A model generated the notes under the pieces. The model was not told where the DNA came from. It was given only the letters and a program-made list of their open reading frames with translations, and ran no database searches. A program made the translations under genes and the position numbers. 64,000 nt of DNA from Podarcis tiliguerta (taxonomy: Eukaryota), in NCBI GenBank assembly GCA_965153285.1, contig OZ229120.1, one strand, 5' to 3'. Shown piece by piece: positions 3,070 through 5,404 of this stretch. Within the stretch, counting starts at the first letter, position 1; each line of letters begins with the position of its first letter.

Positions 3070-5404
3070 ATGAAGAAGCTTCTGCAAGGGCCAGCGAGTG
3101 AGCTCTCCCTGAGCCAGAATCACCACCAGCAGCTTTCCCTCGTGGAAATAGAAACGGACGCCTATGTCTGTGGCGTCAATAGGAAATCCGCCAGCAGTGA
3201 CTTTTCCGCTGCTCAGGGGAGGAGCCCTGGGACCAGGGAGGCCGGTAAAGGTGGGCTGGACTGGGATGGATACATCGAAGCCCCACGGGCGTTAGTTCCA
3301 AGCCAGTGTGACTCAGGGGGTGTCTCTGGCCGCCTGGCCTCAGAGAGCCTTCTGGAGCAAATGGAGAGCCCCGAGGGGCAAGCCGATCTCGCTGCCCTGA
3401 GCCTTGGCACCAGCTGGAGGGGAGTTGCCGGGGAAAGAGAAGGGGAAGGGCCCTGCCCTCCAAGCAAGCCCCTCGCCTACACTCCCTGCAGCCCTGGGCC
3501 CAGAGACCGCTCTGCCGATGTCATTGAGTACATCGTGAAAGAGCTCCAAGGGATAAGTCGCATCCAGACCGAGATTGCTGAGCTCCAGCAGCACCTCACC
3601 TTGATTAAGGGCTCTGTGGACGAAGTCTCCAGCTGCGTGGACACTGTTCTGAGCGAGATTGAGGGCCTGCAGAGCAGCTCTGGCCCCACCAGCAAAAACT
3701 CCCCATTGCCAAAGGCCAAGGCCAGGGAGCCCTTTCTGGGAGGGCCCATCAGAGAGCCAGTGTTGTATTTTTATGGCATCCCAGAGCAGGAGGGGGAGAA
3801 CACCAAGGAGCTAGTCCACCGTTTCTTGTCTGAGTACCACTGTTTCAATGGCATTCAGCGTAGCAAGTACATCAAGGATGCTTACAGATCTGGTGCAGCA
3901 ACAGGCAAGCAGCTGGCCCCACGACCCGCCGTTGTAAAGCTTGCTAATGCTGAGCAGCGAGACTTCATTCTCCAGAAATCGATTCTTTTGCAAAGTGCAG
4001 GAGTTACCATTATGGCCAGTGGTGAGCAAAGCCAGCAGAATGGCCAGGTGGGTCCTGGGGCACAGCTGGGCACCTTGCCCTCGCCAGGCCAGAGTGGGAA
4101 CCACTGGGGCTCCCTGCACATTCGTGGGGAAGTGGTCAGGACGGACGGAGATGGGCAGCTCCAAGTGGACTCTTGCCAGGCTCAGCAGGAAAAGGCTTGC
4201 CAAGAGGTTCACCGCCGCGTAGGGGAGAGGCTTAACTTTCAACCGAAATCCACCCTACCTAGGAAGAGCAACTTAATTGCTGAACTTGAAGAAAAAGTGG
4301 GGAGAGTTGTGCAAATAATGGGCAGTAGTGAGCAGACTTTGCACAAAAGCAGCTCTTCCGGTGGAGTTCTTGATGCGTCCCACAAGAAGCTGGAAGGCCC
4401 TGGGCATGAGAACAAAGGCAGGGATCCCTTGCCATCCCCGGAGTGCTTGGGCAAGGTGCCCGCCTTGTGTGAGGGAGGAGGGGGACGTGCTTCAGATGCT
4501 GAAAATGCCACCAAGGGCAGCTCCTCTCCTGTGGAAGAGGACCAAGCAGGAGGGCTGACTCCAGGGGAAAGCGAGACGGATTGTGATGCCACCACGCTGG
4601 AGTTTCTCAGTCCTGAGCAAGTCAGTCTCCTGGAGGAGGCACCGGTGGCCATGACCACTCCCGGCTGTGATGGCGCTCTGCGCAAATTGGTTGACAGCAG
4701 TGAGACGCTCAAAGACATGATCCAGATTGACCTGAACGAGCAAGACCCAACTGATCAGGTCTTCAGGGATGTCCTAGAAAATTCCCAGTACTTCCTTGAG
4801 CACTCTCGGGACAGCATTGATCTCGTGGACATGAGGTTTTACACTAACAAACTGGGCAAAGCACTGAATCACTTCCGGTCTGCGCTGCAGGTGGTGTTCC
4901 ACAAACTGGAGACTGGGGACCCAGAAGTCCTCCTTGAAGGGGAAAAGAGCTTCCATATGAACAATGAGCCAGCTCCTGCCCTTCGTAGCCCAAGTGTGCA
5001 TGGCAGCTTGGATACCTTTGCTGAAACTCCCCCTAGTCAGTCTTCTGAGAGCCAGGCTAACACGACTGTGAGCAGTGACAGTGTGGGCCTGATGCAGAGG
5101 GCTCTTCCCAGTGCTTCATTGCCTCTTGACGAAGCTCCAGTCCCCGACCTGGTGCCCCCTCTAGATTCTGAGAGCTGTGTGGAGCAGCCCCTTCCCTCTG
5201 GAGAGGCCCAGCAGGATCCTGCGCAGCCCAGCGGGTGCCGACCTATGAGCCTCGAGAAGGTGTGTGCCGAGACCATCTACCTGAACAAGTGCATCAACAA
5301 CTTCAAGAATGTCCTGAGGGAAAAGAGGCAGATGCGTCGGAGGCTCTTGAAGGAACTGGCCCAGGAGGCAAGCTGGACTTCCTCGGCTGAAGAGATTCAT
5401 TCAG
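3070..5404 (+). CDS. UNC13B: Large N-terminal coding exon of brain-type isoform (bMunc13-2-like)
   Basis: Part of the 844-aa ORF 2902..5436. Likely start MKKLLQ at 3070 (aagATGa; recalled bMunc13-2 start is MKRLL); an upstream in-frame ATG lies at 2941. Encodes [21 protein letters not shown] and [18 protein letters not shown], resembling the two bMunc13-2 calmodulin sites. Donor CAG|GTACTC, phase 1. Confidence 0.88.

Follow-up and report, generated by a model that had tools for sequence, protein, structure and literature searches.

A probable LINE ORF1p-derived coiled coil and RRM within the brain-type N-terminal exon of UNC13B

Introduction

Munc13 isoforms set release probability and short-term plasticity, and their distinct N-termini decide at which site and in which mode they are anchored. 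In the current view of the field, the N-termini of bMunc13-2, encoded by UNC13B, and of Munc13-3, encoded by UNC13C, are novel and unrelated sequences which share just a short coiled coil. Where this common piece comes from is the question raised by a stretch of 64,000 nt from Podarcis tiliguerta (GCA_965153285.1, contig OZ229120.1; hereafter the window, to whose whole length all positions refer). An original prediction, made from the DNA letters alone, had located at 3517-4014, inside the brain-type N-terminal exon of UNC13B, a coiled coil and, after a short linker, an RNA recognition motif (RRM) resembling those of the ORF1 protein (ORF1p) of long interspersed elements (LINEs). The analysis presented here supports this proposal: with a probability of about 0.85, the segment is a domesticated LINE ORF1p coiled coil and RRM which was captured once, its helix having been repurposed for ELKS1 docking and its RRM being accessory.

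In the proposed scenario, 3517-4014 would originate from the ORF1 protein of a LINE (L1-type, "type II"), of which it would represent the coiled coil and the RRM without the C-terminal domain (CTD). This fragment would have entered what is now the alternative, brain-type N-terminal exon of UNC13B once and become fixed there, before both the UNC13B/UNC13C split and the divergence of sharks and bony vertebrates, and purifying selection appears to maintain the module in sharks and tetrapods. The coiled coil would have been repurposed as the element by which bMunc13-2 docks to ELKS1, on the C-terminal coiled coil of the latter, a function established in rodents by others and extended here by homology, and through this docking a subset of active zones would hold the priming factor in place. 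The helix would thus derive from the oligomerization coiled coil of ORF1p and may, according to modeling, have kept self-association, while the RRM would persist as a folded and conserved accessory domain having lost its CTD partner and the basic beta2-beta3 loop.

A two-domain module within the brain-type exon

The exon and the three parts of the module are positioned as follows.

3070-5404, plus strand: brain-type (bMunc13-2) N-terminal coding exon of UNC13B (open reading frame list, GT donor, tblastn)
3517-3678, plus strand: coiled-coil helix, module residues 1-54 (helix 2-54 in the AlphaFold 2 (AF2) model, conservation, match to the rat ELKS1-binding motif)
3679-3750, plus strand: disordered and poorly conserved linker between helix and RRM (predicted local distance difference test (pLDDT) below 50 at residues 56-77, low conservation)
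3751-4014, plus strand: non-canonical RRM of the ORF1p type, without the ORF1p CTD (AF2, VIA-align, hhalign, hmmsearch)

Translation of 3517-4014 on the plus strand reproduces exactly the letters which had been quoted for this peptide. With module residue 1 set at the codon at 3517, the module comprises 166 amino acids. Its structure was predicted with AF2 from an alignment of 61 sequences containing UNC13B and UNC13C proteins only, so that no ORF1p information entered the prediction. The resulting model (mean pLDDT 80.5) consists of a helix of 53 residues (residues 2-54, pLDDT 89-97), a linker (residues 56-77, pLDDT <50) and a domain predicted confidently as an RRM, with the elements in the order beta1-alpha1-beta2-beta3-alpha2-beta4 (beta1 82-86, alpha1 96-106, beta2 119-124, beta3 138-142, alpha2 145-159 and beta4 ~164-165; pLDDT 77-91). 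The RRM topology was already hinted at by a single-sequence model. By direct reading of the helix, the a/d heptad pattern is unbroken over residues 13-51, all core positions being occupied by Ile, Val or Leu.

The RRM lacks the canonical ribonucleoprotein (RNP) motifs RNP1 and RNP2: beta3 reads P-R-P-A-V-V-K-L, without aromatics, and a Tyr/Phe is present in beta1, but in the ORF1p-type context L-x-F/I-x-G-I/V-P-E. Pfam RRM_1 gave no match for the module peptide.

Structural resemblance to LINE-1 ORF1p

When the model was submitted to Foldseek, LINE-1 (L1) ORF1p occupied nine of the ten top places, the best entry being 2w7a with an E-value of 3e-3, which lies above the tool's 1e-3 mark. With VIA-align, the L1 ORF1p entries reached Z scores of 9.9, 9.3 and 8.7 (root-mean-square deviation 2.4-2.6 Å, 78-86 residues aligned). 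The best of these alignments (Z 9.9, 2.6 Å, 86 residues) paired residues 79-166 of the model with residues 154-250 of 2w7a. In a Foldseek-independent scan of 48,161 PDB representatives, the chains with Z ≥ 8 were exclusively L1 ORF1p, and the best RRM outside ORF1p was that of nucleolin (Z 7.6). The check by AlphaFold and Foldseek set out in the original prediction thus gave an RRM fold with L1 ORF1p as its best structural neighbors. In the ESM-Atlas, the nearest named cluster is Pfam PF02994 (Transposase_22), with a score of 0.87, which is taken as a lead only.

Sequence evidence for descent from ORF1p

A phmmer search of the 166 amino acids against 1.84 billion proteins returned, beyond UNC13B and UNC13C, two small proteins composed of a coiled coil and an RRM, P0046 (E 1.9e-4) and P0048 (E 3.9e-4), which scored 69.5 and 64.9 bits, respectively, with a profile of nine UNC13 sequences. 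P0048 belongs to a family found in Exaiptasia, Acropora, Porites and Montipora, which is multicopy in cnidarian genomes (332 matches, with clusters of up to 144 members). A profile built from 39 members of this family, hereafter the ORF1p-like cnidarian profile, matched human L1 ORF1p 2ykp with an E-value of 1.5e-11, in an alignment reaching from the last part of the coiled coil through the RRM into the first part of the CTD. It also matched 2ldy, labeled in the sequence file as ORF1 40-kDa product (E 1.1e-6), and the isolated L1 ORF1p RRM 2w7a (E 6.5e-6), while 12 of the 39 members matched PF02994. Judged by these PDB and Transposase_22 matches, the P0048 family is a genuine L1-type ORF1p family.

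Profile-profile comparison with hhalign, RRM versus RRM, linked the UNC13 module to this family with a Prob of 98.9% (P 2.1e-17, 79 columns) when UNC13B and UNC13C rows were used, and of 97.5% (P 8.1e-12, 76 columns) with tetrapod UNC13B rows only. As controls, 20 column-shuffled comparisons gave P ≥ 0.12 and a reversed one P 0.06. The significant match to ORF1p-type RRMs anticipated in the original prediction was hence recovered. On the window exon alone, the ORF1-like RRM profile scored 20.7 bits in hmmsearch (p 2e-8 for one sequence) and placed the domain on exon residues 231-309, which correspond to 3760-3996. UNC13B copies score 16-26 bits with this profile, against 30-32 bits for UNC13C-type copies.

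The residues involved are informative. Five ordered motifs had been claimed for this segment, [14 protein letters not shown]-x-G, P-R-P-x-V-V-K-L and R-D-F-I-L among them, and these coincide column for column with the ORF1p-like family. Furthermore, the invariant UNC13 columns (L83, P89-E90, E94-N95-T96, R124, P135-R136-P137, R148-D149 and G162) are the invariant ORF1p-family motifs. This agreement is far beyond chance.

Conservation, age and a probable single capture

The nearest homologues of the module are found in the squamates Tiliqua, Ahaetulla and Gekko (76-80% identity), followed by birds (~75%), mammals (~60-64%) and frogs (57-62%). Basking shark (P0007) has the complete module, as have frogs, squamates, birds, mammals and UNC13C-type proteins (the mormyrid P0008, and P0009). 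Measured as the majority-residue fraction in 55 tetrapod UNC13B exons, conservation amounts to 0.85-0.90 for the helix and 0.64-0.87 for the RRM, versus 0.42-0.52 for the flanks, and peaks within the RRM over alpha2, [13 protein letters not shown]. From shark to mammals the orthologous exons thus preserve the motifs, as does UNC13C, in keeping with the original prediction. Similarly, a segment of UNC13C which the original prediction had quoted proved to be real: the fish UNC13C-like P0008 and the UNC13C-type P0009 contain KELQGISQIE followed by KPRPVIVIF or KPRPILAYF. The picture is that expected of a domesticated exon, an apparently ORF1p-derived coding sequence residing in a host gene and conserved among orthologues.

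In a maximum-likelihood tree of RRM segments, UNC13B- and UNC13C-type domains form one clade (support 99/97), recovered in 98% of bootstrap trees, in which the UNC13B-type group, including the shark sequence, has a support of 100/99. Homology between the two paralogues also extends beyond the module, to a second conserved island of the exon.

4801-5079, plus strand: second conserved exon island, common to UNC13C and not ORF1p-like (tblastn)

Residues 773-858 of the UNC13C-like P0008 and residues 604-826 of P0006 align to this island by tblastn, and conservation peaks within it at P0058 residues 541-600. This collinear homology indicates that the UNC13B and UNC13C N-termini are paralogous beyond the module.

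Two independent captures of ORF1p, one in UNC13B and one in UNC13C, would be the alternative. Exonization of LINE ORF1 has occurred repeatedly in vertebrates (MYL4, RFX5, NUP42 and USP4), and the outgroups of the tree were restricted to two ORF1-like families, cnidarian and NADAR-fused. Two captures are nonetheless highly unlikely, as the RRMs of both paralogues fall into a single well-supported clade, their coiled coils are ~50% identical, and the homology continues collinearly downstream of the module. Given this clade and the collinear homology, the sequences are most simply read as the result of one capture preceding the UNC13B/UNC13C duplication, and the proposal that the capture predates the split is supported on both counts.

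Some observations on neighboring sequences may be added. The NADAR-fused family (P0046 and P0049-P0055) combines a small coiled coil and an ORF1p-type RRM with a C-terminal NADAR domain (PF08719, "ribA/ribD-fused"), and it is the nearest outgroup of the UNC13 clade in the tree (90/72). The coral ORF1-like protein P0192 (Orbicella faveolata) has been automatically named "protein unc-13 homolog C-like", and dozens of bird UNC13B brain-exon fragments (P0063-P0104) are named "UN13C protein, partial"; both misnamings are attributable to the shared ORF1p-derived module. In the island itself, the motifs ...I-D-L-N-E...F-Y-T-N-K-L-G...H-F-R-S-A-L-Q... can be read, and a further conserved island, [23 protein letters not shown], lies at 5230-5300. 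Neither island gave a convincing ORF1p, Pfam or PDB match, the only similarity being a weak one to HAUS2 (E 0.06-0.1).

Observations against ORF1p descent and the alternative of a generic RRM

Several observations weigh against the proposed origin. Transposase_22 was not matched by the window peptide or by the whole exon even at E ≤ 10, nor by the UNC13C-type P0008 and P0009 at E ≤ 0.01, and single-sequence searches of Pfam and the PDB returned just a low-complexity match to mL100 and coiled-coil noise. With a profile made of UNC13 sequences only, L1 ORF1p provided the sole non-Munc13 matches in the PDB, at an E-value of 0.36 which is non-significant alone. Because a direct Pfam match is missing and the PDB match is of this order, the sequence link from the UNC13 module to bona fide L1 ORF1p is transitive, passing through the intermediate cnidarian family. 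The Pfam and PDB profile check suggested at the outset therefore had a divided outcome, negative for a direct Transposase_22 match and positive by way of the ORF1p-like cnidarian family. In addition, the coiled coil alone aligned to the ORF1-like family with an hhalign Prob of 50%, so that homology of the helix by itself is not demonstrable, and the RhxxhE trimerization motif of ORF1p was found absent by inspection. To these points must be added the narrow outgroup sampling of the tree and the fact that the RRM is dispensable in some lineages, having decayed in UNC13B of bowfin and teleosts and being cut in UNC13C of gadids.

Part of this evidence would fit an ordinary host RRM placed after an unrelated coiled coil, the resemblance to ORF1p being convergent or generic. 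Sequence identity to human ORF1p in the structural alignments is 15-18%, and the RRM fold is very common, with many matches at Z 6-7. Such an origin is very improbable, however, in view of the specificity of the likeness. Profile-profile P-values of 8e-12 to 2e-17 are specific to the ORF1p-type family, with clean shuffled controls, and ORF1p structures stand ~2 Z units above all other RRMs, with the whole domain covered. The motifs shared are non-canonical (G-I-P-E, H/Y-R-x-G and P-R-P/x-I-I), whereas canonical RNP1 is absent, and the coiled coil lies upstream, in ORF1p order. Moreover, non-mammalian UNC13C isoforms have independently been matched to Dfam LINE ORF1p with E < 1e-10 (Kitao et al., PMC12129022).

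The loss of the RRM takes different forms. In bowfin UNC13B, just an alpha1-like remnant is left, and in teleost UNC13B what comes after the helix is of low complexity, while in gadid UNC13C (P0044) the domain ends after beta1, at L-K-F-I-N-V-P-E-E. The helix is retained everywhere, including in lineages without the RRM: in the RRM-decayed UNC13B-type copies of bowfin and teleosts (P0010, P0011, P0013 and P0032), the coiled coil is still 50-60% identical. This natural loss in ray-finned fishes provides a comparative control. As a separate observation, a gecko entry (P0005, Sphaerodactylus townsendi, UniRef) is devoid of the latter half of the RRM, its match stopping at module residue 112 and its sequence resuming past the domain, a gap which may be a real deletion or an error of gene model or annotation.

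Features of ORF1p missing from the module

The original prediction had noted that no ORF1p CTD was evident, and this reading was upheld: a CTD profile built from the ORF1-like family scored ~0 for the exon of the window as well as for ~130 sequences of UNC13, against 9-21 bits in the positive control family, and the sequence after 4014 is of low complexity. In L1 ORF1p, the CTD and the RRM cooperate in RNA binding (PMC5940361). The RRM of the module has a median net charge of 0, versus +2 in ORF1-like RRMs, and the basic beta2-beta3 loop of ORF1p is replaced in UNC13B by the neutral [10 protein letters not shown], while UNC13C-type copies have kept it. The connection between the two domains also differs, as ~24 disordered linker residues separate helix and RRM in UNC13B, whereas in L1 ORF1p the coiled coil reaches right to the RRM (PMC5940361).

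ELKS1 docking, oligomerization and RNA binding

In rat bMunc13-2, ELKS1 binding has been mapped to a coiled coil at residues 145-187, which governs priming as well as recruitment to active zones (Kawabe et al., 2017, PMC5379939). This motif is conserved from fish to human and is 52% identical to the Munc13-3 helix, which does not bind ELKS1 (PMC5379939). With the methionine at 3070 as start, the helix of the window begins at residue 150. This position fits the rat motif, and by homology the window helix is the published ELKS1-binding motif. It occupies the place which the trimerization coiled coil has in ORF1p.

Oligomerization was investigated with a model of three copies, in which the runs (n = 3) agreed in at least 92% of contacts with a partner pLDDT of at least 80. 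The three helices run parallel in register and touch at the a/d positions predicted for them, and the interaction prediction score from aligned errors (ipSAE) is 0.55, versus 0.22 for the best control, coiled coils being easily over-predicted. The model passes the mark used for ipSAE, which 21 of 30 proteins with a structure solved as a one-chain pair attained and none of 23 solved as single chains, in a calibration made on two copies and on microbial proteins. From this model, in itself weak support, the helix is predicted to associate with itself in parallel, as a trimer, much as the ORF1p coiled coil does. In designed coiled coils (Harbury-type GCN4 variants), an Ile/Val/Leu composition of the a/d positions favors trimers.

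Another possibility is that the module still functions as ORF1p does, with a homotrimeric coiled coil and a single-stranded RNA-binding RRM forming an RNP or condensate module at ELKS1-positive active zones. The architecture is kept in order and spacing, the a/d core is entirely Ile/Val/Leu, and the three-copy parallel model scores well above its best control, within the two-copy calibration mentioned above. Two conserved beta1 aromatics, Y84 and Y86, are present as well, and UNC13C-type copies retain the basic loop. This possibility is nevertheless unlikely. The CTD, which is the RNA-binding partner of the RRM in L1 ORF1p (PMC5940361), is absent, the median net charge of the RRM is 0 against the +2 of ORF1-like RRMs, the UNC13B loop has been replaced, and beta3 is devoid of RNP1 aromatics. 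In addition, the helix binds ELKS1 stoichiometrically (PMC5379939), and ray-finned-fish UNC13B has lost the RRM.

For the RRM itself, the absent CTD, the net charge of 0 and the neutral beta2-beta3 loop favor a protein-interaction or structural role, which is more likely than RNA binding; retention of RNA binding is unlikely, though far from negligible. The strongly conserved alpha2 face is a candidate interaction surface. The stronger idea that the coiled coil makes both bMunc13-2 and Munc13-3 parallel trimers, and that the RRM binds RNA or drives condensation, is doubtful on present evidence. If true, a retrotransposon packaging protein would have become a device clustering a Munc13 isoform at ELKS1-positive release sites, and this would provide a structural reason for the differences in priming and short-term plasticity from Munc13s anchored through C2A and RIM.

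Relation to known ORF1p derivatives and to earlier work

ORF1p-derived host exons are known as a kind, and the UNC13C paralogue has already been flagged in print. The homology of the canonical UNC13C exon to L1 ORF1 is given in the Methods and a supplementary figure of a study whose AF2 model of mouse UNC13C contains a coiled coil and an RRM which were left unanalyzed (Kitao, Ichiyanagi and Nakagawa, bioRxiv 2024; Genome Res 2025, PMC12129022). That exon carries the paralogous module, likewise with the coiled coil ahead of the RRM and within a large N-terminal exon, and the UNC13B copy has diverged further from ORF1p, as reflected by its lower profile scores (16-26 versus 30-32 bits). The published note is confined to UNC13C and includes neither UNC13B nor the ELKS1 function of the helix, the missing CTD, the shark age or the loss in ray-finned fishes. 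Full-text literature searches found no other paper tying UNC13B or Munc13 to ORF1p or retrotransposons. The earlier doubt as to whether such a relation had been described is thus settled in part, the ORF1p likeness of UNC13C being in print and none having been found for UNC13B or for the ELKS1 link. What appears new is that UNC13B has such an exon and that the ELKS1-anchoring motif belongs to it, together with the CTD loss, the gnathostome age and the lineage-specific decay of the RRM.

The motif of Kawabe et al. (2017) is the same helix, treated there as an isolated short coiled coil in "unrelated" N-termini arising from "parallel evolution"; neither the adjacent conserved RRM nor a transposon origin was described (PMC5379939). 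Compared with LINE-1 ORF1p (PDB 2w7a, 2ykp, 2yko, 2ykq and 2ldy; PF02994, PF17489 and PF17490), the UNC13B module has in common the order of coiled coil and RRM, the RRM fold and the non-canonical motifs, and is without the CTD, the basic N-terminal region, RhxxhE and a direct Pfam match. L1TD1 and Lyosin, a MYL4-ORF1p fusion isoform, are likewise host proteins derived from LINE ORF1p under purifying selection, and Lyosin also corresponds to an alternative exon of a host gene. In contrast to the UNC13 module, which is gnathostome-wide, lacks the CTD and resides in a synaptic active-zone protein, they still possess the CTD, or RRM-CTD units in duplicate, and arose far more recently (mammals and sauropsids).

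If the proposed origin is correct, the piece shared by UNC13B and UNC13C would be a two-domain remnant of LINE ORF1p more than 400 million years old, and a very old neuronal case would join the short list of ORF1p domestications (L1TD1, Lyosin). The ELKS1-docking helix would gain an evolutionary origin in a trimerization domain, adjoined by a second folded and conserved domain, the RRM, so far unstudied.

Gene identity and surroundings of the exon

The exon at 3070-5404 comprises 778 codons and one base, with a likely ATG at 3070 and a GT donor at 5405. The open frame containing it spans 2902-5436, and the exon is functionally closed by the donor after 5404. Residue 1 of Anolis UNC13B (P0002) aligns at 3070, and the match extends to 5394; exons were compared singly by tblastn, without a joined spliced model. 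Downstream in the window lie the exons of the shared Munc13 core, C1 followed by C2B and MUN, which are 96-100% identical to UNC13B of Anolis, Apteryx and Dromiciops and 70-89% identical to a fish UNC13C-like protein.

20798-21016, plus strand: exon encoding the C1 domain, part of the common Munc13 core (tblastn to UNC13B proteins, 73 residues at 98.6% identity)

Pfam C1_1 is present in the proteins matching this exon. The identity of the core exons, including C1, fixes the gene as UNC13B, and from its sequence 3070-5404 is the bMunc13-2-type N-terminal exon: it is an alternative exon upstream of the C1-C2B-MUN-C2C core and bears the homologue of the ELKS1 motif. The module is part of a single-copy host exon spliced to the C1-C2B-MUN exons, and is not a mobile, multicopy, ORF2-linked element. 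As a host exon with a GT donor and orthologues in shark, frogs, reptiles, birds and mammals, it is to be regarded as an ORF1p derivative and not as an active element.

A further candidate was rejected. The 3' end of the exon resembled the flanks of the Munc13-1 C1 region when the UNC13-only profile was compared with the PDB (E 1.8e-9). This was not reproduced by 5200-5403 alone and is attributed, as an artefact, to the C1-containing P0009 in the UNC13 alignment.

Upstream of the ATG at 3070, the frame is open for 56 codons, with a further in-frame ATG at 2941, and the alignment of a Dromiciops UNC13B isoform (P0105) begins at 2995. A polypyrimidine/AG at ~2815-2823 is a candidate acceptor. The brain-type exon may also be used internally or yield an extended N-terminus. 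Finally, a (GT)n microsatellite lies at 2741-2765, ~300 bp upstream of the start codon of the exon.

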